64,000 bases of DNA from Eutreptiella sp. 'Long Island Sound 2002' (Eukaryota; Protista; Euglenida), in assembly GCA_964036045.1 (NCBI GenBank), contig OZ038379.1, positions 20,088,001-20,152,000 on the forward strand, in the 5' to 3' direction. A model generated the notes under the pieces. That model saw only the letters and a program-made list of their open reading frames with translations. It ran no database searches and was not told the origin of the DNA. Positions 1 through 49,936 of this stretch are shown here, one piece after another. A program made the position numbers and the translations under genes. Position 1 is the first letter of the stretch. Each line of letters starts with the position of its first letter.

Positions 1-2900
1 CAACACGTCGGTCTCACTCACCACCCTTGTCCAAGCGCATGCACTCGCCACATTTCCATGGGACGGGGGAGGGTAAGCCCAAACCAACGGGTGTGCAGAG
101 AGGTTTGACTGGCCTCACAAATAGTGGAATCCCGGCCACAAGCGGGCAAAGGCAGGGTCAACTTCTGGCGGGGCATACATCCGTCCAACCGTGGGGAAGC
201 CTCGGGGCCAAGACTTTTTGGGGTCCAAAAATGGTGATGAGTCACATGATGATCCGAGCCCCTTTTTCCTGCTGCTTCTGAAGGTACCATGTTCACTTGC
301 TCTGTGATTGGGGACTGGGTGGCCTCCGGGGCAGGCTCAGGGGGCATCCCATGGAGCCCTTTATGGAAGGGCCGAGTCCAATCATGGGCTCCAAGTACCC
401 TCAAGCCAGCCTCTAACCCCCGGCAATGGGAGGTCCGCCCACCCCAACCAACCCCGTATTCGAAGCCCCCGCGTCCCTCCTGAGGCTCAGTATCGGTGCC
501 ACTCCGTCCGCACGACCCAAAACAAACATCGGGAAATCAAGAAGTCGGGGGGTGTGGGAGGGATTTAACCATCGACGCAAGGGGACACACCAGATACCTA
601 TTTGTGTGTGTGTGTGCCAGCACACAGTGCCAGCGCGTGCTGTTGTGTGTTCTGTATTGTGTGTATTGGGAGGGGGGGGGGACCCATGCACCCCTCGTTC
701 ATTGACCTCCATGCACATGGTGCCATCGTGCGTCCCTGATCGGGGAACATGCAGCTCCTTGTCATGCACGTCGATGCGTCGGCTTTGTCGAATCGCACAT
801 GCACGATCGGTAGTGATCGTGCATCACCCTTCGGCAGTGGTACCACGTTTTTGTACGGCACCGATACACCGTCGTGTCCATAAGCGGAGGCTGAACTAAG
901 TGGATCGGTGTATATTGCACTAAATGGAAGGGCTAACCCGGCGCTTGCATTTCCTGCCAAATACTCTGACCCCTGCAGCCCCATCCCGCCGCCCACCCAC
1001 CCCACGGACCCGCGCCCACCACCCGCACTTGCTCCGCCGCTGGCTCTGTCAGCCTTTGACATCCCCCTCCTACCACAACTGACAACCAGCACGCCCACTT
1101 CGTCTCTGCCTGTCTCTTCAACCACCAGCGTCACCTTCTGTGTCACAAGCGTCAGTGATCGTCGTACTGTCGCAATATCCCCAGCCTCACCCGCATCTCG
1201 ACGTACATCCAACGTCTGGGTCCTTGGGACCCTGATTGGTCACACAAAGGGGGGGTTGAATACAATAATTGGTATGGCCGCTGCAGGCAATTCGCTGCAC
1301 AAGGGAACGGCAGTTGCAAGTACATTAAGGACAGATTCGGTGCCCCAAGCGGCGGCAGGCAATGCGTCGGGGGAAGTACAACCACATGCAGGACAGATTC
1401 GACGCCCCGACTGCTACGACCTTCACGAACTTCCAACAGCCCCCATTTACACTCGGCCCTGAACAACTCAAAAACCATCAACGACATCTACAACCGCTGC
1501 TGAGTCCTCCTTCTACCTTCACCTGTCTTCTCTATGCCCCAGCTCCTGCAGACAGTGACCCAGAGGGGTGAATGGGTTTGGGGCGCAAAAGGCACCGCTT
1601 TTGTGCTGACGTACAACACACAGCATCAGGGGATAATGCGACGATTGAGGGAAGACGCGAAAACATGCGACAACCGGCTTCTCCGGCATTTTCTTGGGTT
1701 TCATGGCGTTGATTCCTTTACCCCCCCCCTCCTTTCCGCAGTGCCACCTGGTGGCTGCATCGATGCCATGAGCAGCTCCATGCGGCCCGTGTCGTGTAGG
1801 CGCTTGACTCAACCCCAAAGAGGAGTCACTGAACCACCCCACCAGTGCACCCGGGCATAGTGTGTCATGCACCCATGCGTGCGTACGGGCAGGGCAGACT
1901 TGGTGTGTGGAAAACAAGCTCCAGCCGCACGCCGATGATGTTCCGCATTCCGAAGGAAGCCCTCTGCGTGCTCCTCTGTGCACGTCTTTCAGCTGCGAGC
2001 TGATCGATCGAAGTTGGGCGGGGAGGGGCTTCTTGAGTGCAATGAAGTATCTGTGCATTTGTCTGTGCCACAACCCTCCGGGGTGCAGCGGTTGCCGGGC
2101 ATACAGCCCGCCACCCTTGTGCCTGCCGCAGTCCTTGAGCCAGTCAGACGGCCCGGCAATTGCAACCCCCCCCCCCCCTTCGTGCATCACGCCGTCCCAC
2201 GGCGACAGCAGCAGGCAGGCACCGTTCACCAGGTCTAAGCCCCTCTGGGAGTGATGCAACCATCTCAGGGTGTGCCCATGGGGCCTGCCGTCAGTAGGGC
2301 GATTGGCCTGGTGCCGCAGAATCCTATGACCCCTGGGACCTGTCCTCGTTCCAACTGAAAGGATTCTGTACGCTGTCCGGTGGTTGACAACATAATGGTC
2401 TGCTGTGGTAACACGTTTTGCGCATTGATTTGGTCTGAGGTACTCCATGGATGGTGCATCACCTCTCTTCTAATGCATGAATGCCCCACCAGTCCTCCCA
2501 CCATGTTTCCGATCACCTCTCGCCGAGTGTCTACATTTTTGTCCATGAACAAGATGCGCTCTGTCGGCTTGGGCTCACTTTTTGTCCCACAGTGAACCCT
2601 GCCCTAGCCAGCGTATCCCTGGCCCGCACCACCATGCACCACAGCCTGGATTTGCTTGATACCGCCAACAGAATGTTGTCGATATACACCTGGTGGTTCC
2701 CACTCACCCTTGTCAGTGCCCCTTTGACTATGGCGCTACTATGGGGCGTACTCAAGTTTGGCATATCAATAGGCTATACGACCACCCAAAGGGAAGCTGT
2801 ATGTACTTCATGCCTTGCCCCCTGCACCACAAATATGGAAACCCACACTCAGGGCAGCTGTGCACTCCAGGACTCATTTTGAAGGTTCAGCGTGGCCATG
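1..2900. mobile_element. Zone of heavily decayed retroelement-like sequence
   Basis: Short broken ORFs with fragments reminiscent of non-LTR post-RT regions (e.g. KLTLPLPA.G at ~130-160 on the minus strand). There is no intact domain and boundaries are approximate. Confidence 0.25.
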
Positions 2901-3239
2901 TACACCTTTTCCCTCCTCCAAACAAGTGCGAGGGTGAGGGCACCTGGACTGCCCAGCCTGCGGCGGGACTCCGGATGTGGCATGTATTTTCGGCTGAAAG
3001 GGTTATGTAGCCATTTTGCCACGTGTGGGCTCCCAGGATGACAGGGGAGGGGAGGCGCGCGGGGGGGGGGGGGGGGTTGGTTTTGGGTTTTGGGTTGGAC
3101 CCTTCTGCCAGGACCCCACCATGCCAGGCCACGGCGAGCCATGCTACCACGCATGCTTGGAGGATCCTGGTTGCCTCTTCGGGTCCGCGAAGCCACAGGG
3201 GTGGCCCCACTGCCGCCTTCGCGACAGACGGGTGAAACA

Positions 3240-4545: not shown

Positions 4546-4577
4546 TTGCACCCAGAAGCGCCGCAGGGGCGTGCTCC

Positions 4578-4995
4578 ATGGTTCGTGTCTCTGCTCTGTC
4601 TGCCGATGGCTGCGGGGCCCCGCCGGGGACCCAGGCCTCAAGCTGGCAGCCCTTCGCCTGTGCGGGGCTTGTCGGCTGCTGCATGATGCTGGGCCTCGTC
4701 ACGGCCGGCACCTCCCCCTTCCCCTCCACGGGCCTGTGGGCCTCTGCCCCGGCCGTTTCCAGAGTTGCGGTGCGCCCCGTTCCCTCTGCTGCTGTGCTGA
4801 CGCCTGGACGCCCCGCGACACTCAGGGCCGGCCCTTACGATGCCGTCGTCGCCGCAGTCGCCAAGGGACCGGACCCGACGGTGCCTTCGCTGCTGATGCC
4901 GGAGTCGACGCCGCACGCGTGGCCGATGGTGTCGGGTTTGGCTGCGATCGGGACTGTCGTGGTGGCGTTGTGGAGCAGCTTCTGGGGCCCCAAAG
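4578..4995 (+). CDS. Exon 1 of plastid-targeted candidate selenoprotein (class I euglenid presequence)
   Basis: MVRVS... contains hydrophobic TM1 (FACAGLVGCCMMLGLVTA), an S/T/A/P-rich transit region and TM2 (GLAAIGTVVVALWSSFW). It ends at donor AAAG|GTGTGC (GT 4996, phase 1). Confidence 0.8.
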
Positions 4996-5919
4996 GTGTG
5001 CACCGGCGGGGGCCTTGTGCCGCTTTGTGCTCTTCGTGTTGTGTGTCTTGCCGCCGGGGGAAAAGTGCCGGAGTACCAGCACCAGCGGTGCTTCGTTGGG
5101 CTGGAGAACTGTGGGGAAGGGCTTGGTTTCCAGAGACAATGGGCTGGGCTCTCTGTGCGCCTTCGCACTTGAAGTGGACGGAGTTTTTTTCTGCAGAACA
5201 CTCAGTCCAGCCACCGTCGTCGTCGGTTGGCCCTCAGCCGCAGTCGGTTGGTTCGCGTGTGCAGCGGCGGAACTCCAACAAAATATGCCCCTTGTGTTTC
5301 TCAGCCCGGCTGTCTGGTCTGGCGTGGGGGCACTTTCCGCGTCGTCCGGTTGTTTGATGGCCCTGGGCGCACATCCGCTGATGTGGAGCTGACGGGACAG
5401 CTGTTGGGCCGGGCGTGACCCCGCTTGACAGTCACATGGTTGTCATTTGCCGTCGGTGGTGCATGGCTCACCCCCCGCACAGTGGAACCCCACACCCCTG
5501 TTTACTGTGCGAAAGTCCATCTCCTATACATCATGGGTTGCACTGCGTGCACGCCGAGTAGAACTCCCACATGCCAATCTTGTATGGATTGGCGTGTACA
5601 GCGTATGGGCCAGAAAATGGGCCAGGGGTCGTGGTACGCTTGCGATTATCCTCGGCAATCGGACGGAGACGTAAACCGGACGTGTGGGTAGTGCAGGCCC
5701 AACTTGGCATGCGTCGGATACGCATGAAGCAAGCAGCATGGGAAGGGGGGCGCCTCATGTGGTTATATGATGATGTAGTTGTCCTTGAAGCATCACCTGA
5801 CTGGGTCAGCGCCGCTTCACTGGATTGAGACGCACGACAAGAGGCATTGCAGAAAGATGGTGCGGAACACAAGTGATACACGGACGAAACGGGATGCTCA
5901 TGGGAGACCCGCTTGTGTT

Positions 5920-6150
5920 TGGGGGCGCACCGTGCGCTGTGCGCGCGCTGTGCGAAAAGTCGGCTGTTTTTCACCACCGGTAGCCACGGGTCCCAGGGTC
6001 CTGAAATCTGCACCCCCGATGCTGTTTTGAATGGATCATGCACGCTTCTGGAGGTGGGTGGTTTTCAGGGGTGTTCCCGGGATAAACAACGTAATAATTG
6101 GCGCTGTGCCTGCGCTATGCGCGCGCTGTGCGAAAACGCCCCCTTTCTTC
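5920..6150 (+). repeat. Intronic dispersed repeat (second copy at 16215-16525)
   Basis: Shares GGGGGCG.ACCGTGCGCTGTGCGCGCGCTGTGCGAAAAGT and GGTGGGTGGTTTTCAGGG...CGTAATAATTGGCGCTGTGCC...GCTGTGCGAAAACGCCCC with the 16.2-16.5 kb copy. Confidence 0.85.
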
Positions 6151-6261
6151 GGAACCGGTGTCATGGGTCAACGACCCTGTCAAAAGAGCCTTGTCCCTGC
6201 ATTGCACTCCTCAACCCCAAGCCCCAAGGCGAATTACCCATCGATTGTACGTGTGCTTCAG

Positions 6262-6316: not shown

Positions 6317-7214
6317 GTATGCTGGCCGCTCCCATGCACCCTGATGCACCCCGTGTGCGGCGTGATTTGCCAAAGGGTTTTCATCTGCGTCACCTCCGCC
6401 TGTGTGACAGACATCGTGGGGGTGGGTGGGTGGGTGGGGAGCTCTTGAGCCTGCAGCTTATCCCGGGTGTCGTGGCTTGCTGCAAGCGATGGCGGAACAC
6501 CATACCAGCCAGTTCTTAGTCATAGGGCCTCAGATTTCAGAGGTGCCTGTGCTCCTTCCGAACTGCTTCATGTCCACTTCGGTGCCTTCCCGGGCATCAA
6601 TGTGCATGCTGCGCTGCCCTCGGCGCCAGGCTTGCCTCGTCGACCCCGGGAGCCGGAAGGGACTAAGAACGCTGGTGCGGGAGACGGCCCGTGTGTTGTA
6701 CGTCTACCTCCACCCTGACCCCGATTTGCGTAGAGCCCCACTCGATAATGAAATGGACACCTTATTCAAAGGCCTGCCCCCCCTCCCGCTCAGACTTCCA
6801 GAACGGTCACATCTTATCGATGTCCAGCTCGTATACCCCCTTTCAGGCGTTATTGTGAGGCCCTGCGCGCGCGTGCGTGCGCAGCATGACACCTGGACAC
6901 GGTGTACGCATGGCCTTGTCTGAGCACGGGATCCCCATGTGACCGTGGTCGCTGCTGACATGGGCCTCATGCGGCCTCTCCACGTCACGAGCTGATGAGG
7001 ACGCCTACTTTCTGGCCGGCGCGTGCCCCATAGAGGCCTCTCATGCCCTGCTTGGGTGGTGTGCTCATTAGAAAACCCTCTTCCTGGAAGAGCGTGCGTT
7101 GTATAGGCCTCCTATGGCCTCCACCACGCACGTACTTGTCAGCAAACCCACAGTCTGGCCAGTGCTTGCCGTGCCTGCACACACGGAGGGGATGGGGGGG
7201 GGGATTTTTGGCAT

Positions 7215-7600
7215 TGACCGACCGCGTCATGGGGGGGCGGCCGGGCCCAGTCCTTATATGCAACCCCCCAGCCCCCTCCCCCCCCCCCAAGTTTTGAGAG
7301 ATAGTGGTGCTGGGGCCATGGCGCCAACGGCGCCAAATTTTTTTTTTTTGCATGCTTAGTTGAAGGGGGTACTATGCCTCTGGTCCTTGTTCTGCTCCCT
7401 TTGTACAGCCCAGTGACACACCATGGCAACACTTGACCTTGAGAAGTTGCTGAAGCGAGGGAACTGCATGGTGTGCAAGAAGCCCCCCCCCCCCCTTGAG
7501 AACCCCTCTCCCCCCCCACCGTATTGCCAATTGAACCCCTCCCCCAACTGCCCCCCCAAGTTTTGACAGATAGCTGGGGAGTGGGTCGCATCAGGACCGA
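7215..7600 (+). repeat. Dispersed repeat pieces (copies at 32595-32700 and 33225-33285)
   Basis: GGCCGGGCCC.GTCCTT.TATGCAAC...GTTTTGAGAGATAGTGGTG.TGGGG.CATG.CGCCAACGGCG recurs at 32.6 kb. CCCCAAGTTTT.ACAGATAGC...GTCGCATCAGGACCG.TTGTAGTC recurs at 33.2 kb. Confidence 0.8.
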
Positions 7601-8026
7601 TTGTAGTCCCCCCCCACCCCATGGACCGCACCCTCCCCCCCCCTGGTAGCCATAGTGATTGCAGTACAATTGAGCAGTGTCAAACTGAATGAGTCCGGCA
7701 TGAGGTCAGGATGATGCTGGTTATTTCATCCTGACATCATGGCCCTGGTAGCCATCTCTCCCTCACAGTCACAGAGGTCAGCTGTCACGCACCTGACACC
7801 TGAACGAGAGGTACGCGGTTCGAACCCTGGGGGCACTGGATAACGAGCACCCAGACCCCCCTGCCATGGCACAAGTGCAGCAGCTGGGCATCCTCAAACA
7901 CCACGGCCTTCAACATGATAATGAATTGATAATGATCACAATGGCTCTCCGGAACAGGAGAAAGCTCAGGTTTTCGCCTCGCCTCACCTCACCTCACTTT
8001 ACCCCTTACCTCACCTCTCATCGCAG

Positions 8027-8612
8027 TCTGCGTTCCAAGGCCGATGAAGCCGCCGGAGAGGCCTTCGACGACCCCATGGCGTCGCAGTTCAAGACCATGT
8101 ACCGCCCGGGGCAGGGCAAGCAGATCACATGGGGGATCTTCCAGACCGACGTCCCGACCCCCAAGAAGGCCAACGGCGAGAATATGTCCTTTGCCGAGTT
8201 CGCCGCCGCCGACTCCGCAGAGCGCCAGCAGCTGCGTGCCACCGCAGCACAGGAGCTGACCAACATTGGGGCCGAGGAGCGGGGCCGGCGGTACAAGGCC
8301 GGCGTATTCTTTGGGGCCCTGGCGGTGGCGCTGGGCGTGTTCCAGGTGTCCACCGGCGCGCCCCCGCTCCAGCGTGCGGCGATGGCGCTGCCGCTGTTCT
8401 TCACCCTTGGCTTCACGGGCTCTGGCGCGACGGGCCTGTGAAACATCGGTCAGGCCGGTGTTTGGGACGTGGACGGCACCGGCCTGCAGGAGATTGAAGA
8501 CCAGGGCGTGGCGAAGGCGATACGGGACAAGGTGAACGCGTTCAATGCCACGGCGGCGGTGGTGGTGGCGCTGCTGACGGCCGCGTACTGTGCGCTGCCG
8601 CTCAGCAACTGA
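8027..8612 (+). CDS. Exon 3 of candidate membrane selenoprotein, with in-frame TGA (putative Sec) at 8439-8441
   Basis: Pyrimidine-rich acceptor ...CTCTCATCGCAG| (phase 2). GC3-rich codons continue past the TGA for 56 codons (NIGQAGVWDVDGTGLQEIEDQGVAKAIRDKVNAFNATAAVVVALLTAAYCALPLSN) to TGA 8610-8612. There are three hydrophobic segments and a SECIS-like hairpin downstream. Confidence 0.8.
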
Positions 8613-8679
8613 GGCGTGACCCGCGGTGATTTGGGGTGAGGCGCCGACGGCGGCGGACTGATCTGGACGAGGGGATTTG

Positions 8680-8745
8680 CTGCGTTGGTGACGGCGCCTG
8701 CCGTGAGCGCTGCGGTGCCGGTGGGAGGCCTGATTATTCATGCAG
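8680..8745 (+). promoter_or_regulatory. SECIS-like element (form 2) in the 3' UTR
   Basis: Folded by hand: helix I CTGCGT(8680-85)/ATGCAG(8740-45); core GTGAC(8688-92)/TGAT(8731-34); helix II GGCGCCTGCCG/CGGTGGGAGGCC (10 bp including G-U pairs, with a 1x2 loop); unpaired TGA (8704-06); mini-helix GCGC/GTGC with loop TGCG. Confidence 0.7.
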
Positions 8746-9900
8746 AAGAAGACCTTCGAGCTTTTGAGGTCTGATAAGTCGTTGGTTGCAAATGGACTGT
8801 ACGGCGGGTGTACGGTATGCGGTATGCCACTTACCCCCCCCCCCCGTTCATGCGTATGACTTGTGTACGCCGGTTGCAGGCCTCAGAAATACCCATTTCC
8901 GCAACGTTACCGTGCATTTATCCTCCAATGGGCTAATTTGGGGAAATGGGGGGAATTGGGGGAAACTGTGCGAGATCACCCCAAAGAGAGGTTGTTAGAT
9001 CAAGCGTAGGCGCGGATGCCATACATCTCCCCTTATGGGGGTCGTTCACATAGCATACTCCAACGCATGATATTGGATATCTAACCCCTTGTAAAATCAT
9101 TCTTTTGTGAGACACAGTGATCCTCCAATGAATTTTTCGATTTTGAGCCCCTACCCCCTGAAACTGGATACCACATTTTGGAGAGGTGGAGGGGTGGGGG
9201 TGGGTGGGGGGGGTTGGGGGGTCCAAAAGTTTGTGCTTTGAAGGATTTGGACTAGGGTCGGAGCTGATGAGCGAATCGACCCGTGCGGATGGTTGCCGGC
9301 CGCGATTCGAACCGACATCAGGTAAGTCGTTCCATTTAGCTCCATTACAATGGCACAGTGGCATTGTGAAATAATCGAAATCAGCAATGTTGTTGGAAGC
9401 CTGACTCACACATGCCCAAACGCCGGTGACCGGTTCCACCAGCAGGCTAAAAACAAGTGTTTCTGTGGTGTAGAAAAAGCAGTCACATTTTCCCAAATTT
9501 TCCATCCATCCTAACTCCACACTTTTTTTCATTTGCCCCCCAACCCCCGCCCCCTATATCACCCCATTTCCCCCCATTTCTCACCCTTTCCCCCCCATCC
9601 CGACCCCATTCCCCCCCCATTTTTCTTGGTGCTGGGTGCATTTTGGGTACGTTGCTGGGTATAGTACTGTCCACGTGGTCTGGGTATTTCTGAGGCCTGG
9701 GATTGTGTGCCCCGTGTCTGCGTTTTGCATGGCCATTGCACCCCCGCTGTGGCGCAGTCCCTTGGGTGGGTCTGTTGCATGCCGAACGCAGTGCACCCAC
9801 GCGTCCCAATTCCCTGCAAAAACCCCGTTTGCATGCAATTGGGTGTTTGGTGGGAAGCCCGAGTGTCGGTGATTCCCGATCCTGTCAGCAACCTCGCAGG

Positions 9901-10027
9901 GCAGCAGGAGTGCTGTCTTTTGCCGCAGAATTGCTGTCTGTTGCAGAATTGCAGCGTGTTGTGGCAGCAATATTGCGCGTTCTGCAGTAATGCTGCCTGT
10001 TGTGGCAGTAATGCTGCGTGTTGTGGC
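9901..10027 (+). repeat. Degenerate ~21-bp tandem repeat
   Basis: Units resemble GCAGTAATGCTGCGTGTTGTG. Confidence 0.7.
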
Positions 10028-10399
10028 CAACTGTTATAATCTTGCTGCCAGAAAGGTACAAACAGATCCACAGGACTTATTTTATTTTGTGCAAACAATT
10101 TAATGTTTGCACCGGAGGTTGTCTTCTGCCTCTTCTAAGCTCAAGGCACGTCGGCCGCCTCCCCGCACAAGCCAGGAAGACCATGGACAATGGGCAGGCG
10201 GGCAGTGGCCAAAAGAGGTGAGGCGATGGCCGGAGTACTTTACGAAAGTCCATGCTTGGTCCAGAAACCCCAGAATTTGGTCCCTCCTTTCGAAAGCGCA
10301 CCCAACACTACTTTCCCCAATTTCTGGCTGAGATTTCATTGAACCCGAGTCGTCAGTGGCAGCGGTCGCAAGCATGCATCTGCAGAGGTCGTAAGGTGA

Positions 10400-13300
10400 A
10401 CAAGCCCCCCATGAGACCTTCCCTGAGCTTACCTTGAGTGGGTTTATCCCCCCTCCGCCGCACCACTGAGAAGGGGTGCATCACAATCACCGATCCTGAA
10501 TGACGAGCACGGCGATATAGGGCGCGAACCACGGGGCACTATCCTCTGCTTTGTCCCCCTGCGCACGATGGGAGAGCCTCCACTGTAAACCCTGTGGCCC
10601 CTGTGATCAGGATTATGCCCCGCAGAACTGACGACAGGGCGTTGGGGTGGGGCTCCGGGTCTGTCAGAAACCGTCTGATAAGGCAGGTCGTGCCCCCGTG
10701 CGGTCGCCTGCCCGTCCCCCGGTGGCGCATTTCCCGTGTCGTGTGCTCCGTGGGTGGGACAGGGCGTCACACCAATCAACCAACCGCAGTGTCTCGGGAT
10801 GGGGCTCTGGGAATTCATATGGATAGCGTGGGACCACACGACACAGTGGTGTGTAACGCAGGCACACCCCAAGGCAGCACGGCACGACGGAGAGGTGATG
10901 TAGGGGGGTTTGGCAGAGCGGAAAGAACACCTAATAAACAGGGATTGGGTTGGGGCCTGCAGTGAAATGGCGCTCGTGATTTGTCCTTCCACCTCAGCAG
11001 ACCAGGGGAGGAGCTTTGCGGTATGCGGCCTTGGGTCCAGACTCCAGTGCCGGCTCCATTCGATTAAGGGGCGGAGCTCTGTGGGGGTGTTGACAGGAAG
11101 CCCGGCCAGACTGCCTGATCCCATGAGCATCCCAGTGTTTTTGGTTAGGGCCTGATCCTTGACTCCGGCTTCCCGAGTGCCTTGTGGAGCTTTGCTCTGC
11201 TTGGCCACGCCTGTACAATACATATGTATAATTTTTTCCGACAGTTTGACGGGTCAAAACCAGGATGGATGTTTTTGCAGGCAGTGGCCCTCAAACTTGT
11301 GGGAACCTTCAGCCCTGGACCATTGTTTGACTGCCATGTGGAGTGCCCTCCAGGTGACGATTCTTTTTGGAGAGCCAGGCCAATTGCAGTCTGCAAACAC
11401 CCGCATTGGATTCTGCCTGCATTGCAATGCCCCATGTGGCGTAGTGTATGTACAGCTGTGGGTAGTGCTGTAGGGGTCACAAAAATGGTGTACCACAATG
11501 TGGGAGAATTGGCCTTTCACAGGGACGACATGTTTGTTCAAGAAACCGCCACTGTCAATCTTTCTCTGCAACGCAGTAATTTACTTGAATCCGTGGCATT
11601 CTGCAAAGCGGTGTCCATTTCTGACTTACACTTCAAACATACACTCAACACTTACTTCAGCACTCATAGACACACACACTTGCACACACAAAATTCGCTG
11701 ACACACAAGCAGCACTCACTCACGTCACAGAAGCTAGGTTATACGATGGGTGGCACAGCCCTTGTAACATACTGGCAACCTTCCTCATTTCGTCCTCTTT
11801 CTTCCCTTTGTACTTTACACCCCTCTTAATTGGAGACCAATTTTTCTCTTCAACTTCCACAACACAAGTGGGGACGTCAGCCCACGGAAAACTTGATGCG
11901 TTAAGAAGATTAAAAAAAAAAAGTGATCACGTCAAACTGCTACTATCAAATTACAGATGGATACAAAGAAAAGGAAGAGGTCCAGAGCAGGGCACGCATG
12001 CCTTAGACCATGCGGAGTGAGGGCATACGAGGGAGGGGACAGAGAGGCGATAAACACAACACACGCACTACGGTAGAGGAAGAAGGGCATGAACGAGTAA
12101 CAGGTATCTAGAGTTTGAGAAAGAGAGTTGGACGGAGATGTGCATAGACACATCAGAACGAGGTGCATGAGGTGCATGCATGAGGTCTATGTAGGATGCA
12201 GTGTCTGGCAACAGTTTCGTGGTCGAATGGCCTACCCTGATGGTCAATCAAACCACTGGAAATCTGAGGCCTGTTTTAATCAACACAAGAGACAGACCAG
12301 CATATAAAACCATTACGGACCGTGGCATGGCCAAGATTCCACTCCCTGAAAGGGGCTGAACTTAAGGACTGGTGGATGCACAAAAACAAAAGCAGTCCAA
12401 ACTGCTACAAGCAAGACTGCCACAGCTCCTGTCAGGTTTTGTTTGCTTTCTTGCTATCCTTGGGAGTTGTGTCAAAGTGTAACTTCTGGTCAAATGCTCA
12501 TCAAGGACTTTGAATGGGTGAGAGCAGGAACTATGGGGCCCCCCTGGCAATCTGATGCTGCATAAGTTGATAGCTTTTTCCACCCGATCCTTGCAAGAAA
12601 CGGGATTGTGATTTTTGTCGCATCCACTCCATACCTAAGGATTAGGTGGGCACAGACAGACAAACTGGTGCTAATTTGCCCACTAGGTGCAAAACTCTGT
12701 CATGTTCTAAATGGTCCACAGTGCCGAGAACCCAGATGGAACAATCATACAAACACTCAGCTCACATTGTTGGCCAGCTGGCAATGGTCCTGGAACTTTG
12801 CATTCAGGAAGCAAGTGCCAGGCTGGCATGAGCGGGCTCAAGCCCTCCCAACAAAGGGCCCAGACGGCCAGATACTGGAGTTGGTGCACTGCGTGCAATG
12901 CCGACACAATGAAACCTAGCCAGGGAGGAAGGGAGGAAACCCCGATGCATTTATGCAGGCGTCACAAGGGTCCTCATATACTTGGTGATTGGTGGCCGTG
13001 GCCAAGTGCAATCTGCTGTTGTGTGAGTGTGTTGGAAGATGGTGGCAGCCTTCTCGGGACATAGGCATTCTGCCTTGACCCCATTGGGGCCCAACTTGTA
13101 GCAATATGCAGCACTATGTGGGCCATTACTGATAAACCATGCTACTGATTCGCAATGATCTGAGAGCGCGGATGGAGGGTTCAAGTGCTGGTTCATAAAG
13201 AGAATCCACAAAGACATTGTTTCCTAGAGATAGCAAGGCAATGACCATGAGGGTTGGAATCCGCTTTGGAGTGTGTAACAACCCACCTGCCGATTTGTTG
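10400..13300. mobile_element. Decayed retroelement-like zone
   Basis: Broken ORFs with retrotransposon C-terminal-like Cys/His fragments. No intact domain was recognised. Confidence 0.25.
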
Positions 13301-13540
13301 CATTCTGAATGTACACAACATCCGGTGATTCCCCATCATCATAATCCACCATCCACCTAAAACAAAGAACATGCAACAAAACCGGGTAAAAATGGGCTGA
13401 AATGGCTGAAAATGGGTGAACATGGGTGGCAATTCAAATGTGCCACATCCTCGATGCACAAGAGGCGTAAACAATTCTATTATGGAACAACCAACTGGTG
13501 AAAAAAGGCCAAAACTAGGGTTCAAGTAGTTGCCGACATA

Positions 13541-14046
13541 CCCCCCCCCCTTGTTGTTCCCCACCCCTTGTCGTTCCCCGGGGGGGGGGGGGGGGACCGT
13601 CACTTGGTCAACCCAAAATTTTCGTTGCGGCTCATTGTGTTGTTGTGTGGGTGACTGTGTTGTGGGGCACTACCACTTGCATCCCTTGCACTCATGGCAG
13701 GGAATTTTGCTCACTTTCGCTGAAATGGAACTTGATAGCACAACCATGTTTCCCCCTGGGACAAGTGGTGAGCATGTGGAAGAGTTCACGGTGAAGTGGA
13801 GCAGGACCGAGAAATTTTACACCGAGCCGGTCAAGGAGTAGGTCTCCGTACATTGGCAGCCCTTTGAACACATCCTATGTTGAATTCTTTCGTTTTATTT
13901 TGCAATTTTTGTGCCTGCAAATGTGCGTGTACGGTGGGGTGTGGTCCCCCAGGGGGGGGTGGGGGACCGTCACTTGGTGACCATCCCCCAGGGGGTGGTG
14001 GGGGACCGTCTTCCCTGGGTTGGGGAACGACAAGGGGGGGGGAGGG
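13541..14046. mobile_element. TA-flanked MITE-like element with C-run terminal inverted repeats
   Basis: Left end TA|CCCCCCCCCCTTGTTGTTCCCCACCC; right end GGGTTGGGGAACGACAAGGGGGGGGGAGGG|TA. The internal direct repeat GGACCGTCACTTGGT lies near both ends (13594, 13964). Confidence 0.7.
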
Positions 14047-14718
14047 TACAAAAGTTTGCACTGCGTGCGCACTGCGGGCGCACTACGTGCACGGCATTCC
14101 CCTTGGCCTGGTGTCTTGGTCCTTGAGTCCCAGGTTTGTCACATTCCGTGGTGCTGCCTTTGTTCAGTGGTGACTTTCCTCGAAACCCCTCGCCATCCCC
14201 TTGTGCAAGCTAACAGCACTTCTATCTCGGTATTAATGTGCAGCCTGATTTGATTCGGTAATACCTGTGATGCCGCGCACAAGGGTTGGGCTTATGGATT
14301 GTAGGCTTGCACAGCAAGCATCTCACACTACCGCGAAGCGGAGGCCTCTCTCCCGGAAAGCACAACACCACAGAAGCAATGCAAGCGTTTTTGCCGGTTG
14401 CTCTGCACTTTTTGGGTTGATCCCCCCTCACATCTTGAATATCAATGTTCAATGACCATCAGTCGAGAGAACATTCGGCATTCTTAGTCTTTCGGGAGAC
14501 AGCCGATGGCACATTCTGCTTGAGCTTGAGCGGTTCAGTGGACTGATTCCGGCCACGTTTTGGGTGACCATAGCACCAAATGCCTTCGCTGGTACGTACG
14601 CAGCCTTTGCATTGGGAGATTTTGTCAACCATTGTCAGCCATTGTCAACCACGAGCCTTCACTGTGCTCACTCATCGCTGCATCACTCACTTTTGTCAGC
14701 GGTCGATCCCCTACGACC

Positions 14719-15105
14719 ATGTACATCTCCAGCCTCATCGCTCGGCAGTGGCCGCAGACGTTGCGACGATCCCTTCTGCGTTGTTCTGCGCGCATCCACC
14801 AGCCCACAGACTGCAGGCACAAACGAACGGCTGCCGTTGCTGCAACACAGCACAGTGCATGTCCATGGCCTTCCACGTTGCGGTCCACCCATGTCCGGCC
14901 CTTGAGCACAAGATCAGGCGCCCAGGGGCAGTACCACGAGGTGCTCAAGAAGTGTCCGCCCGACGAACCCGCATTCAAGGCAGTCGTGACCCAACTGCTC
15001 GAGCAGCAGACACAGTTTGAGGATTGGCTGGTGCAGCTGCGCAGCAGTGGTGGTGCGAGTGAAGGCAATCCAGCGCTTGTGGATGAAGTCGCGTGCGCTT
15101 TACAG
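14719..15105 (+). CDS. Exon 1 of hypothetical protein with mitochondrial-type presequence
   Basis: The ATG is preceded by pyrimidine tract + CAG (14697-99). The N-terminus MYISSLIARQWPQTLRRSLLRCSARIHQ is Arg-rich and acid-poor, followed by a helical region. Donor TTACAG|GTACAG is phase 0. Confidence 0.6.
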
Positions 15106-15747
15106 GTACAGGGCTCTGCCGGTTCCCTGCATGTTGTACTTACCCCCCGCCCTCCGTGTCAGCGCAACAGTAGGTGTTGTTTCCGGCAACTTTTGGAACT
15201 GAGTTGTTGCTCTCGCAAGGGGAGGGGGCGGGGGTACAACATCATCCCAAGAGACTATGTCGTGATTGTTGTGGCATAGCGCTGTTGCCCTGAAAGCCGG
15301 AAGGGGCAGGCTCCCATCGGGGTTTGACATGCTGCGTTTAGTCTGCTTCGCTGGGTCACACTTTGTGGTTCGTTGTGTCTCAAGTGTGCTCTCCGCGCTC
15401 TCTTCCTCGTGCTCCGTACAACGCCGCAGTGCTATGGTCTCTTGTAGAGTGAGACAGTCGCAAAGGAAACGCAGCGCATTGGCTGCGAGCGGGCAGTGTG
15501 CCACAGGTGTTCAGTGTTTTAGTACTGCCCTACCTCAGTCAGGGGGTTTCGCAGCTTCTCCCGGAGATGGAGAGGACGGGGCTTTTCATCTGCCCCCACC
15601 CGGGCAGTGTTGTTCGGACGTAATTGTGTTCAAGACCCCAAGATCGCCTTCGTTTCCTTCTCATCGCCGTCGATTCCCCTGCAAAAGAGAATCCCGTCGC
15701 TCCAGAGGTCGATCGAGACTACGTGAGGCTTGTACCGATGGATGCAG

Positions 15748-15864
15748 GTTGAACGATTCGAAGGTGCCACTCGACTAGCGGCGCCGGGAGTAAAGCCGCG
15801 GCCTCCAAACACTCCCCAAGACCCCGTGGTCGAGGGTTCGCACACGGGGGTCCGACACCGACGG
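15748..15864 (+). CDS. Possible exon 2 of the 14719-16940 gene
   Basis: Acceptor GATGCAG|GTT is phase 0 and encodes VERFEGATRLAAPGVKPRPPNTPQDPVVEGSHTGVRHRR. Phase-0 donors exist at 15865 (GTGGCA) or 15883 (GTGCGT). The exon could also be absent, since exons 1 and 3 join in phase. Confidence 0.35.
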
Positions 15865-16214
15865 GTGGCATCACGCCCGGTCGTGCGTGAGCGTGCTTGG
15901 CGAGTGGTCCTCAGGAATAGGGCCCATGCCCCGGAATTCCCTTCGACTGCCGGGCCCCAAGCAACGCACGCTGGGGGTTGTTATTTCGACCGTTCAGCAC
16001 CGCCCTGACCACCATCCCCCGCCCTGTGTCCCTTGTGATAGAGCCAGAAGGGGCCCGAGGTTGGGAGAACAGGGATGGGGCTACGTAACCACGCGGCAGT
16101 CTGGAGGCGTGACGCATGGCGACGTGCCGGTTTGTACCATCAGCCATTTGGGATGGGGCTGTCGAAAGCCGATGCACGTTGCCGCTGTCTTGATGGCGAC
16201 CTCTGGACAACATG

Positions 16215-23935: not shown

Positions 23936-24489
23936 TTAAGAAATCATGCTCAACGCCCAGATAACGAACAAAGATCATGCGGCTTTTGCGCCCATAAGCT
24001 GCGCAATAAGTTCCCCCCAACTCTACGAGGAGAAGGAAGACTCTGCCATGAAGAATCAGTGTTAGAGACTTCCTCCTGGACATGCCCAGCCAACAGGTAA
24101 CGCTTGGTCAAAGGAGCTTTACAAAGGTTGTAATGATCTAGTATGTGTGAACCTGAAGCGTAAATTTTTGGTGGCAACAGATGGATTGTTTCACTATGGT
24201 ATGACCACAAAAAATATTCACTCAAGGGGTTACGCCACGGTGACTGCACTGGCACTGCAAATATATGCCGCACACACCGTATTGTTTGGCTGGTTGCATT
24301 TATGTGTCACACTACGTACAATGACATGAAACACACTTCACAGGACTTGTGCTCGAGTCTATGATCGGTCAATGATTGGTTCACTCTTGAGGGTCACTCA
24401 AAATGAAATCCACCTTGCATGCAACCACTTACATGCAACAGACCTTCGCATATTTTTTAGTGATGACTGCAAGTACAGTTGATATCTTC

Positions 24490-25950
24490 ATGCCGCAAGA
24501 GGACAGGCTCTTCTGTGCACATGCACATGAGAGCCTTGTTGCCCAGTGTACGGTTGATTTGGATGAAGACTTGGAGGCGGAATGGTCGTTGCTCCAACTT
24601 CAAGCTGTGGTTCAGCAATGTCTAAAGACGTCAGCAGCCCCAGCACCACCTTCGGAAACTCTCAAAACTGCACCAGGCACACAGGTAGTCCAGGTTGTCG
24701 AACACCCAAAGTCTGTGATAATGGGACTCCCATTTCACGTATTCGGCGACGTCTTCTCCTTTGTTCCTCTCCGTTCCCTCTCGGAGGCTGCCACCGTGTG
24801 CAGCAGTTGGGCCGCAGTGGCCCGCTTTGCTGTGGAGGAGACGGAGAAGAGGGCTGAGCAATATGTGCACGAAGGGTTGCTCCGTATGGCTACCACCAAT
24901 TCTCCTTGGGAAAGCCTCGACAAATTCCAGACTGCCATCGCCGTCTTTCCGAGGATGATTAAGGCATATTATTGGGCGGCAAAGGCCTTTCTCATCCTCA
25001 ATGACTGCGAAGGTGCCATTCGCACCATGGATCGTGCCTTGCAGCAACAACCATCTCGGTCGGAGAGTCTCAAGTTGCAAGCTTGCATCCTGTACACCTA
25101 CGGTGATGACCGCCATGCCAGCGAGCTCCTTGAGGAAGCCCTTCGCTTGGAGCCAAACGATGCCACGATTCACTTTGAGCTCGGGTTTTGTTATCAAGGG
25201 CTTCGAGAATTTGCCAAGGCCATCGATTGTTATGCAGCTGCCCTCCGACTCAATTACACTCGTGCTTTTGTGGCACTGGCGAACCGGGCTGATTGTTGGT
25301 ACCACAGCAACAAGATGGAAGAAGCCTTGGAGGATCTGACAGCCTCGTTGCTTATCTGCCCTCACTACCCCTTGGCTTTGAGGATCCGTGCCATTGTAAA
25401 TGAGCACCTGGGAGATGCCCACGCCGCGCACAAGGACTACACCACCATCATTGAAACTGCGACAGATCCGAAGGTCCAATCCGACGCCTATTGCGACCGC
25501 GCTGTCTGTTTCGGCGACGTGGACGTGGACGACATCGAGCAAGCCCATCGGATCTATCCCAACTACCTGAAACCTGTGCAGTTCAAAGCATCTGCATTGG
25601 TAAACGATGGTCGCGTTGACGAGGCCATCACTTACGTGTCCGAGTGGATGGCAGGCACAACTGCAAACGCAGATCGTGCCAGCCAGTACGCTTTTCGTGG
25701 GGAGCTGTACTCCATCATCCGTGACTGGAAGGCGAGCATTCGAGATTACGAAAAGGCCATAGAACTCACCGAGCATGGCAAGATTCCAGAATACCCGGAT
25801 TACTGCGATGATTACGACGCTCGTGAGACTGTCTCTGCATACTTTGAGCGCCTTGAAGAACTGAAGGCCGAACAACTGCTGGAAGAACAACCGCCTAGAT
25901 TTTCCCTCGCATCCCCCACAGGAAACGATTTTTGGGGGCATTCCAATTAG
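24490..25950 (+). CDS. F-box domain + TPR-repeat protein, uninterrupted ORF
   Basis: F-box motif LPFHVFGDVFSFVPLRSLSEAATVCSSWAAVA, then about 9 TPR-like repeats (e.g. ATIHFELGFCYQGLREFAKAIDCYAAALRLN). The ORF is open from 24403; ATG 24490 follows a CAG at 24476-78. Confidence 0.88.
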   Translation: MPQEDRLFCAHAHESLVAQCTVDLDEDLEAEWSLLQLQAVVQQCLKTSAAPAPPSETLKTAPGTQVVQVVEHPKSVIMGLPFHVFGDVFSFVPLRSLSEAATVCSSWAAVARFAVEETEKRAEQYVHEGLLRMATTNSPWESLDKFQTAIAVFPRMIKAYYWAAKAFLILNDCEGAIRTMDRALQQQPSRSESLKLQACILYTYGDDRHASELLEEALRLEPNDATIHFELGFCYQGLREFAKAIDCYAAALRLNYTRAFVALANRADCWYHSNKMEEALEDLTASLLICPHYPLALRIRAIVNEHLGDAHAAHKDYTTIIETATDPKVQSDAYCDRAVCFGDVDVDDIEQAHRIYPNYLKPVQFKASALVNDGRVDEAITYVSEWMAGTTANADRASQYAFRGELYSIIRDWKASIRDYEKAIELTEHGKIPEYPDYCDDYDARETVSAYFERLEELKAEQLLEEQPPRFSLASPTGNDFWGHSN

Positions 25951-48030: not shown

Positions 48031-48610
48031 GGTTCGAGGAAGTGACAGCAAGCATCTAGAAGCTGGAGCCGGTGCCTGCATGAGTGCAAATGGATTTTCA
48101 GAATACAGTGCATTACTAAACGCCTGGTTTTCAAGGATCTTGCACAGAATGAAACGCAGCATACTCTGCCGAATCGAATCCCCCCCCCCCCCGGCACCCC
48201 ACCTGCTGGTAGCGGTCATGCGGTATGGAGAGTGTGTGTTGTGCACACATTTCGTGTCGTACCACAGATCCATGTTCCACGGTAGTGGACACATTGATGT
48301 TTAGCAGCACCAACTCAAATGGCTCACGCGACATTGCATCCTGGTGATTTTTTTTTTTGCAGCTGTTTGCACCATTTAAGGAGTGCATTACTCCATGGAG
48401 GGACAAGAATGTTCACAAAAGCCCCTAGATTGTCCTCGATATTTCTATTTTGAGTAATTTCGCCACAGCCATTTACAGTGCGTGCCATGGGCTGTGACTG
48501 TGGTCAGCTAGGGCTTAGAAAGGGAGGTGGGCGGGGTTGCCATGGTAATAATTGGGCCTTTGGTGCTGAGCATAGACACACTCTCATGCAGTTGGCCAAA
48601 AGAGACTACC

Positions 48611-48910
48611 AACAGCAGCAGCAGCAGCAGCAACGGCAATGGTAATGACGATGGCAACATCAGCAACAACAACAACAACAACAGCACCAGCACCAGCACC
48701 AGCACCAGCACCAGCACCAGCACCAGCACCAGCACCAGCACCAGCACCAGCAACAGCAGCGGCGACGGCGGCGGCGGCGGCAGAAGCAGCAACAACAACG
48801 CCAGCATCATCAACAACAGCTGCTGCAGCAGCAATCACAACAACTGCAACAACAACTGCAATGACGTCTGCAACAACAACGGCTGCTGCTGCTGCTGCAA
48901 CGGCAACAAT
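48611..48910 (+). repeat. Compound microsatellite (CAG, AAC, AGCACC, GGC, CTG)
   Basis: Directly visible runs immediately upstream of the carrier CDS. Confidence 0.95.
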
Positions 48911-48988
48911 GACTTTCGTATTTTCGGACTTATCGCCTCGCCACTGCAGGTTGGCCATTTGTTTCCGCCACTGCGCCTCGACACACCA

Positions 48989-49936
48989 ATGATCAATGCA
49001 GAGAGGCCCATTGACACCGGGGCTTGGGCTCAGCTCCGCCAACGCATCCAGCGACAGGACTGGCAATCTTGGGTGGCGGGCGCTGTGGCGGGGACCAGCA
49101 TGGCCGTGACGGGCCACCCCTTCGACACCCTGAAGACCCGGATGCAGGTCGACGGGGCCCACCGCGGCGTCCTCGCATGCGCCCGGGCCACGGTGCAGCA
49201 CGAGGGCGTCCTCGCGCTCTGGAAGGGGCTGTCGCCCGCGCTCCTGACGTGCGTCACGACATCGTCCATCCGCCTGGGGGTCCAGTCCTGGGCCAATGCG
49301 GCCATCGCGCGGCGGCTGCAGTCGAGGGACTTCGAGAGCCTGGGGCTGGCGACGCGCGTGGGGACGGAGGCGGCCGGGGGGGCCGTGGCGGGGCTGGTGC
49401 TGCCCACCATCTTCACGCCGCTCGAGATGGTCAAGTGCCGGAGGCAGACGAGCACGCGCGCCGGGGCCCGCGGGCCCGGGCTGGTGCGCGTCATGGCCGA
49501 CGTGCTGCGGGCGGAGGGCCTCCGGGGCGTGTACGTCGGCCATTCCATGACCGTCCTGCGGGCCACGTCCGGCAACGCGGCGCTGTTCGGGCCGTACGTC
49601 CTCGCGAAGGACGCGCTCGCCCGCGTGGCGGGGGAGGGCTCGCCCGCCGTCCGCCCGGCCGCGGGCATCATCGCGGGGTGGTGCTCGTGCCTCGTCTGCT
49701 TCCCGGTCGATGCGGTCAAGACGCGGATGCAGGTCGCGGGCGCGCCCGGCGGCTCTGGGCACGCGGGGCTGGTCGACCTGCGGGGCATGTGGCCGCACCA
49801 GGCGCTGAGGCAGCTCTGGCGCGAGGGCGGCATGTACCATGGCGTAGGGCCCGCGATGATGCGGGCCGTGCCCGTGCACATCCTCTACATGCCCGTCTAT
49901 GATTTTGTGGCCGCGAGGCTGCGCATGTGGACGTGA
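48989..49936 (+). CDS. Mitochondrial carrier (SLC25), carnitine/acylcarnitine or basic amino acid carrier-like
   Basis: Three carrier signatures: PFDTLKTRMQ, PLEMVKCRRQ and PVDAVKTRMQ, plus the motif GVLALWKGLSPALL. Uninterrupted, very GC3-rich ORF. Substrate assignment is inference. Confidence 0.92.
   Translation: MINAERPIDTGAWAQLRQRIQRQDWQSWVAGAVAGTSMAVTGHPFDTLKTRMQVDGAHRGVLACARATVQHEGVLALWKGLSPALLTCVTTSSIRLGVQSWANAAIARRLQSRDFESLGLATRVGTEAAGGAVAGLVLPTIFTPLEMVKCRRQTSTRAGARGPGLVRVMADVLRAEGLRGVYVGHSMTVLRATSGNAALFGPYVLAKDALARVAGEGSPAVRPAAGIIAGWCSCLVCFPVDAVKTRMQVAGAPGGSGHAGLVDLRGMWPHQALRQLWREGGMYHGVGPAMMRAVPVHILYMPVYDFVAARLRMWT

Follow-up and report, generated by a model that had tools for sequence, protein, structure and literature searches.

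An in-frame UGA in a probable euglenid gene is very probably the selenocysteine codon of a membrane protein related to Ostreococcus hypothetical protein 3

In the window, by which we mean the whole stretch of 64,000 nucleotides analyzed here, a reading frame on the forward strand is interrupted by a TGA at 8439-8441, directly after the residues ...GFTGSGATGL, and the question raised by this locus is whether that codon ends the protein or is recoded. The sequence as read gives the codon context GGC CTG TGA AAC ATC. Past this TGA, exactly as a previous sequence-only reading had described, the same frame stays open over 56 sense codons (NIGQAGVWDVDGTGLQEIEDQGVAKAIRDKVNAFNATAAVVVALLTAAYCALPLSN) until the next TGA at 8610-8612. 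The GC content at the third codon position (GC3) is 0.86 when these codons are read in frame, and the two alternative frames have 0.71 and 0.44. By our estimate, an open frame of 56 codons would arise by chance at the base composition of the window with p ~0.16. We consider it highly probable that the UGA at 8439-8441 is decoded as selenocysteine (Sec) by way of a SECIS element in the 3' UTR, most likely the hairpin at 8680-8745, and that the product is an orthologue of a protein predicted in Ostreococcus under the name "hypothetical protein 3". The features on which the argument draws are given below, each with its strand and the evidence for it.

4578..4762 (+): tentative first exon; open reading frame, translation, and an exact metatranscriptome contig at 4552-4762.
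7975..8026 (+): acceptor region (pyrimidine-rich tract, then AG) of the intron before the last exon; sequence, with homologue similarity beginning right after it.
8027..8438 (+): last exon, part 5' of Sec; family profile, alignments, and exact RNA contigs at 8039-8257.
8439..8441 (+): in-frame UGA, very probably read as selenocysteine; TGA in the homologous loci, TGC in L007, and U in the published Ostreococcus proteins.
8442..8609 (+): 56 codons 3' of Sec; pN/pS and the model of a Cys homologue.
8610..8612 (+): terminator TGA; homologues have TAA or TAG at this position.
8680..8745 (+): candidate form-2 SECIS; constrained folds, minimum free energy (MFE) fold, and shuffle test.

The last exon opens at 8027, directly preceded by a pyrimidine-rich tract whose final letters are cag. 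Upstream of the UGA (8027..8438), it encodes a conserved DP..QFK.MY.G.GK.I.WG.F motif, an amphipathic LTNIG.EERGRRYKAG helix and two transmembrane helices (TM1 and TM2), with GSGATGL as the last residues, and downstream of it (8442..8609) it encodes a short helix, a WDVDGTG turn, an amphipathic helix and a third transmembrane helix (TM3) that contains a Cys (AAYCALP). Both protein pieces, before and after the TGA, had zero matches in Pfam and NCBIfam. A contig from the genomic DNA run X4 is identical to the window over 7586-9004, and thus the TGA at 8439-8441 is not a consensus error relative to the reads of X4, which may be the assembly's own data. A third in-frame TGA occurs at 8637-8639 (+), eight codons past the terminator at 8610-8612.

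Comparison with homologous loci bears directly on the meaning of the codon. A search with the 137 residues 5' of the TGA returned six relatives along with the window's own call, and all six end in ...GSGATGL. When the contig DNA was read, TGA was found at the Sec column in all seven homologous loci concerned (L001, L002, L003, L004, L005, L006 and L008), one of which (L006) was contributed by a metagenome scan. The peptide that follows the TGA in the homologous loci reads NIAQAGVWDVDGTGLQEIED..IRDKVN.FN...AAYCA(I/L)PL, and its identity to the window peptide is 47-65% in homologues as distant as green algae. In L003, L004 and L005, the frame breaks off shortly past GVW, and the resumption of the same peptide ~200 bases further downstream suggests an intron in L003 and L004. 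Between the window and the three closest loci (L001, L002 and L006), the 56 downstream codons have a pS of 0.55-0.58 and a pN of 0.11-0.19, which corresponds to a pN/pS of 0.20-0.35, and the ratio is 0.49-0.65 for two more distant loci. Purifying selection thus acts on the 56 codons past the UGA. As both the TGA and the downstream peptide have been kept in seven other loci, the open frame after the TGA stands far above chance.

A profile built from the N-terminal pieces and searched against 1.84 billion cluster representatives (at 50% identity) gave 298 matches at E <= 0.001, and the state of the Sec column was sorted for the best 153 of these 298 representatives. As many as 126 of the best 153 end exactly at the Sec column; the truncation that standard annotation had been expected to impose at this TGA is therefore widespread, and it removes the last third of the protein, including the third membrane helix. 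Six representatives (P0050, P0065, P0073, P0132, P0143 and P0147) have Cys at the column and then continue, three (P0086, P0087 and P0118, all public gene calls) have "W" and then continue, and the remaining 18 are fragments or other cases. L007, the only locus checked for this codon, encodes the Cys with TGC. In L008, the only "W" representative with its DNA read, the codon is TGA (L008:414-416), which indicates that the gene caller used a code with TGA as a sense codon; the Trp at this position of the L008 database sequence is therefore misleading. With TGA or Cys at the column and conserved sequence on both sides of it, the homologues agree with the earlier proposal that the protein reads TGL-U-NIG. 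Sec forms account for ~9/10 of the readable representatives, which suggests that the function is selenium-dependent. In addition, the gene terminates at a TGA where its homologues use TAA or TAG, so that UGA is not generally a sense codon here. The conserved UGA, the Cys substitution, the constraint on the downstream codons and the TGA terminator together rule out a frame open by chance as well as an old pseudogene, and the UGA at 8439-8441 is very probably the selenocysteine codon of a small three-helix membrane protein. No tRNA (including tRNA-Sec), other component of the selenocysteine machinery or Rfam match was found in the 64-kb window.

Recoding of a UGA in this way calls attention to the 3' UTR, where a SECIS-like hairpin ~250 nt downstream had been pointed out. 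The hairpin at 8680-8745 lies 249 nt past the UGA at 8439-8441, and its core lies 76 nt past the terminator TGA. Helix I pairs CUGCGU (8680-8685) with AUGCAG (8740-8745), the core is formed by G-UGA (8688-8691) and GA (8732-8733), helix II consists of 10 pairs, and a three-base UGA bulge (8704-8706) is followed by a 4-bp mini-stem (8707-8718). The shape, core, spacing and helices are thus those of a SECIS as proposed, whereas the apical bulge is UGA and has no AA motif, with G-A where the SECIS elements of L002 and L006 have A-A. To our knowledge, every described form-2 SECIS has an unpaired A-A. A scan for canonical AA-type SECIS elements on the + strand over 8613-16000 gave only weak hits within repeats and none with sound helices I and II. 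When the AA requirement was dropped, the hairpin ranked first of 20 candidates in the pattern and folding scan. When the 3' region was dinucleotide-shuffled 300 times, under criteria fixed after the hairpin had been seen, a SECIS-shaped candidate as stable arose in only one shuffle.

Canonical form-2 SECIS elements were identified by the pattern and folding scan in four homologous loci: L002 (AUGA at 1029, GA at 1088), L006 (GUGA at 2414, GA at 2466), L008 (AUGA at 641, GA at 686) and L003 (AUGA at 1963). All four have an unpaired AA 13-17 nt past the core and a solid helix I, and they are located 30-110 nt after the stop codons; three of the four are nearly identical, and MAFFT misaligned the set. 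The near-identical sequence UGACCGGCCCGCCC is common to the prasinophyte-like loci L002, L003 and L006, and a convergent downstream gene on the - strand (L002:1359-1964, L003:2223-2534, L006:about 2800-3120) is also common to these loci, which points to conserved synteny among prasinophyte-like algae. Rfam reported no SECIS at E <= 10 in the 3' region of the window gene, nor at the gathering score across the whole window, nor in the homologous loci. As the clearly canonical elements of L002, L003 and L006 were also missed by Rfam, its negative result for the window is uninformative. Ostreococcus SECIS elements as a rule carry a G ahead of the UGA core (PMC2375036). Taking the structural observations together, we judge the hairpin at 8680-8745 to be the probable SECIS of this gene, with a confidence modestly better than even. 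A minimal spacing between UGA and SECIS applies to UGA decoding. The terminator UGA stands only 76 nt before the hairpin core, and this closeness may help it to act as a stop rather than as a second Sec codon.

The transcription of the locus was followed in three estuary metatranscriptomes, in which exact contigs were found at low depth at 4552-4762, 8039-8257 and 9683-10300, and which yielded no exact contig over the UGA, the 3' UTR, the 3' end or a splice junction. The organism thus occurs in the sampled estuaries. The contigs suggest that the last exon is transcribed, and they fall short of proof because such a library can also carry DNA. The contigs at 9683-10300 lie 1 kb past the gene and past the repeats, and they could belong to a neighboring gene or to a long 3' UTR. 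Upstream, the open reading frame that starts from ATG 4578 (4578-5000, +) has two hydrophobic segments, which flank an S/T/P/A-rich stretch of ~60 residues, and this arrangement would fit a class I bipartite plastid presequence. As many in-phase GT sites occur in this frame, no single splice donor to 8027 can be distinguished. A pattern search of the 64-kb window found no spliced-leader-like sequence.

Several other elements were observed in the window. Very high-copy repeats, with numerous variant copies and junctions that lead elsewhere, occupy 5779-6172, 7158-7748 and 8931-9324, that is, the putative 3.2-kb intron and the region directly past the 3' UTR, and their word depth in a genomic run is 10^4 to 2.5x10^5 vs ~20 for single-copy sequence. 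A long, uninterrupted open reading frame at 48527-49936 (+) contains three mitochondrial-carrier repeats (Pfam E = 4e-50), with the nearest relatives 57% identical, and another at 24403-25950 (+) contains TPR repeats and a weak F-box-like match.

Four other explanations of the locus should be weighed against SECIS-directed decoding from the hairpin. That the TGA at 8439-8441 is an ordinary stop, with a downstream frame open by chance, would be compatible with the chance estimate for 56 codons; this explanation is refuted by conservation, as the downstream peptide retains its identity to the homologues under purifying selection, and its probability is practically negligible. Readthrough of the UGA independent of selenium, through a reassigned code or a near-cognate tRNA for Trp, Cys or Arg, would find some encouragement in the W of three database representatives. 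However, the "W" of L008 proved to be a TGA called under another code, the true sense-codon homologues carry Cys, the usual counterpart of Sec, canonical SECIS elements are present in homologues, the same gene terminates at TGA, and the family had been predicted as a selenoprotein by SECIS-based methods (PMC2375036). We thus regard selenium-free readthrough as highly improbable.

The two other explanations concern the state of the SECIS. The UGA may encode Sec with the true SECIS elsewhere in the mRNA, for example, past the repeat block at 8931-9324 or brought near by an intron in the 3' UTR, in which case the hairpin at 8680-8745 would be a chance GC-rich structure. The absence of the AA motif found in all four homologue elements, the setting of the shuffle criteria after the hairpin was seen, and the exact RNA contigs at 9683-10300, which indicate transcription further downstream, speak in its favor; yet the + strand over 8613-16000 offers no AA-type SECIS with sound helices, the hairpin is the best of the 20 relaxed candidates and outdoes 299 of 300 shuffles, and its 76-nt distance from the stop codon resembles that of the homologues. 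A SECIS at another place is thus unlikely, although it deserves serious consideration. Alternatively, the gene could be a decaying copy that has lost the AA motif of its SECIS, so that the ribosome halts at 8439 and leaves a two-helix fragment or nothing useful. The non-canonical apical motif, the very low RNA coverage, restricted to the region upstream of the UGA, and the surrounding very high-copy repeats speak for such decay, whereas the 56 downstream codons contain no frameshift or stop, differ from the closest loci mostly by synonymous changes (pN/pS 0.20-0.35) and keep an in-frame GC3 of 0.86, and decay would need to be very recent. We therefore consider a decaying copy to be very unlikely.

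To place the Sec residue in a structure, we consider the AlphaFold model of the Cys homologue P0143, which was built with a 50-row alignment and has a pLDDT of 92 and a pTM of 0.81. The model consists of two short N-terminal strands, helices at 46-67, helices of transmembrane length at 73-99 and 104-126, Cys 129 right after helix 2, a short helix and a strand (WDV), and a long helix at 150-179, and the region equivalent to the post-Sec part of the window protein has a pLDDT above 90. According to this model, the family protein is a three-helix membrane fold, and the third hydrophobic helix anticipated from the DNA is recovered both as TM3 in 8442..8609 and among the three long helices of P0143. 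In alignment A4, all six full-length Cys forms keep E-R..R ahead of TM1, one Pro within TM2, G.C(U), and W-D.D..G as invariant residues.

Under SECIS-directed decoding, the exon at 8027-8612 would code for the mature portion of a small membrane selenoprotein with three helices. The UGA at 8439-8441 would be translated as selenocysteine under the direction of a SECIS, a task that we assign to the hairpin at 8680-8745, to give a product that reads ...GSGATGL-U-NIGQAGVWDVDGTG... and ends at the TGA at 8610-8612. The Sec would be positioned at the membrane surface, where TM2 ends, adjoining the invariant E-R..R, the Pro of TM2 and W-D.D..G. The selenol may then serve as the reactive center of a membrane-anchored redox or chalcogen-transfer protein, a biochemical role that we purely infer; we know of no relative with a tested function. 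A fixed selenenylsulfide partner is unlikely, because the Cys of TM3 (AAYCALP) varies within the family. The upstream presequence exon would probably send the protein to a secondary plastid.

A wider reading joins three proposals. The hairpin at 8680-8745 would work with G-A in its bulge instead of A-A, in which case the selenocysteine machinery of this lineage, probably euglenid, reads a different apical signal. The gene would have come from a green-algal plastid ancestor and been fitted with a bipartite presequence, which would make its product a selenoprotein of a secondary plastid. In addition, the family would be the Sec form of a widespread, uncharacterized DUF2892-like membrane fold. 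We hold the three jointly to be tentative, with somewhat less than an even chance of all being right.

Comparison of the P0143 model with known structures and families gave several likenesses of different depth. Foldseek against the PDB, as well as a profile search against PDB sequences, returned nothing meaningful. In the AlphaFold DB clusters, the model was matched by a green-algal homologue (E = 3.5e-12) and by unnamed proteins of 125-142 aa at an rmsd of 1.2-1.9 A. Two AlphaFold DB entries named DUF2892 were matched over P0143 ~64-182, with a TM-score by hit of 0.82 and 0.69, an rmsd of 1.7 and 2.2 A, and E = 7.5e-4 and 1.4e-3, respectively. Similarly, a shape search of the Atlas matched clusters with PF11127 (YgaP-like_TM) to the two-helix core of P0143 (residues 59-146). 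DUF2892 proteins have a lead-in of the form N-x-G..(D/E)R..R, two transmembrane helices and then a Cys, and the sequence-only reading had proposed a likeness to small bacterial membrane proteins with a Cys after the second helix, which correspond to this DUF2892/YgaP-like type. The likeness finds some support in the fold, but it fails the Pfam threshold: the best PF11127 score, reached in one of 50 members, is 11.2 bits (E = 0.44) vs a cut-off of 25.3, and the window's own two protein pieces have no PF11127 match. Assignment to the DUF2892/PF11127 family was rejected, as the sequence score is far under the Pfam gathering threshold. Moreover, an additional beta/helical part at the N-terminus and a third transmembrane helix set the window family apart from DUF2892 and YgaP-like_TM. 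The only studied protein with a PF11127 domain is E. coli YgaP, a membrane-anchored rhodanese sulfurtransferase (PMC4730233); it was absent among the Swiss-Prot fold matches of the P0143 model. A scan of bacterial and archaeal genomes with a WD[VI]D-centered motif gave zero relatives, and the literature searched contained no link between DUF2892 and selenoproteins. Given the model comparisons, the DUF2892 resemblance may be taken as a reasonable structural lead. One of the 50 members of alignment A2 has a weak Glutaredoxin match (E = 0.0014), and bacterial Atlas clusters combine Glutaredoxin with YgaP-like_TM; these matches possibly hint at a thiol-redox context.

The C-terminal domain of fungal Rax1 (RAX1_C, PF27892; S. 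pombe rax1 and S. cerevisiae RAX1) was also matched by the P0143 model, in the AlphaFold DB clusters, Swiss-Prot and the Atlas, as a similarly shaped three-helix membrane domain (Foldseek E = 9.5e-4 with a TM-score by query of 0.59; Atlas TM-score by query of 0.62 over 136 residues). In contrast to the window family, RAX1_C is joined to an RGS domain, and the identity is only 12-17%. Rax1 functions in bud-site selection, which is unrelated, and we know of no Sec or Cys link for it; the likeness may be a convergence of fold. MSP ("membrane selenoprotein"), described in Ostreococcus, Chlamydomonas, Volvox and Dictyostelium (PMC2375036), resembles the window family: both are predicted selenoproteins of the membrane, occur in unicellular eukaryotes and are nearly always in the Sec form (PMC2375036; PMC7539508). 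Membership in MSP was rejected: MSP has two Sec residues and was a separate family in 2007, and the window gene has one UGA before its terminator.

The closest known system is the predicted selenoprotein hypothetical protein 3, found in O. tauri and O. lucimarinus (Lobanov et al., 2007, Genome Biol 8:R198; PMC2375036, supplementary file 2), which is one of four novel Ostreococcus selenoproteins, is separate from the two-Sec MSP, and was predicted by SECIS-based methods (PMC2375036). Both published sequences read ...GFVGSAK(S/T)GL-U-NIAQAGVWD..., with U at the column of the window's UGA (PMC2375036), and the motifs NIAQAGVW and QAGVWDVDG were located by us in both (supplementary file 2; PMC2375036). 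Whether the family was already listed in algal surveys, a point on which the sequence-only reading did not commit itself, is thus answered in the affirmative. A later algal survey has a "Hypo" class and leaves euglenids unmentioned (Jiang et al., 2020; PMC7539508), and hypothetical protein 3 was probably counted under this class; the literature searched contained nothing on euglenid selenoproteins. The family profile matches the O. lucimarinus-like cluster P0014 at E = 1e-27, and the nearest neighbors in the ESM Atlas include a chlorophyte cluster automatically named "Selenoprotein family protein". On these sequence comparisons, the window protein is an orthologue of hypothetical protein 3, and, as the family was described in 2007, the window gene is a further member rather than a new selenoprotein. 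The family, at ~300 clusters at 50% identity, extends far beyond the pair of Ostreococcus entries known from 2007. What is new here is the probable euglenid host with its presequence, the SECIS candidate without AA, and the size and fold of the family. Current understanding is not overturned; an orphan selenoprotein family gains experimental handles, and the window member would add to it a probable plastid address, an AA-less SECIS variant and a confident three-helix model whose shape ties it to DUF2892-like proteins of bacteria.

The window protein and hypothetical protein 3 have the same architecture, as seen in the Ostreococcus motifs ...GFVGSAKSGL-U-NIAQAGVWDVEGAGLQKIED...IRDKVNDFN...AAYCALPL, and both have only one Sec, at a shared column; the SECIS of the Ostreococcus genes is in the 3' UTR. 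They differ in an extra segment of the window protein, PKKANGENMSFAEF, which is common to one subgroup of the family, and in the SECIS candidate of the window, which has no AA motif. In addition, the upstream exon in the window resembles a bipartite presequence rather than a simple transit peptide, and the host of the window gene is a probable euglenid, whereas that of hypothetical protein 3 is a prasinophyte.
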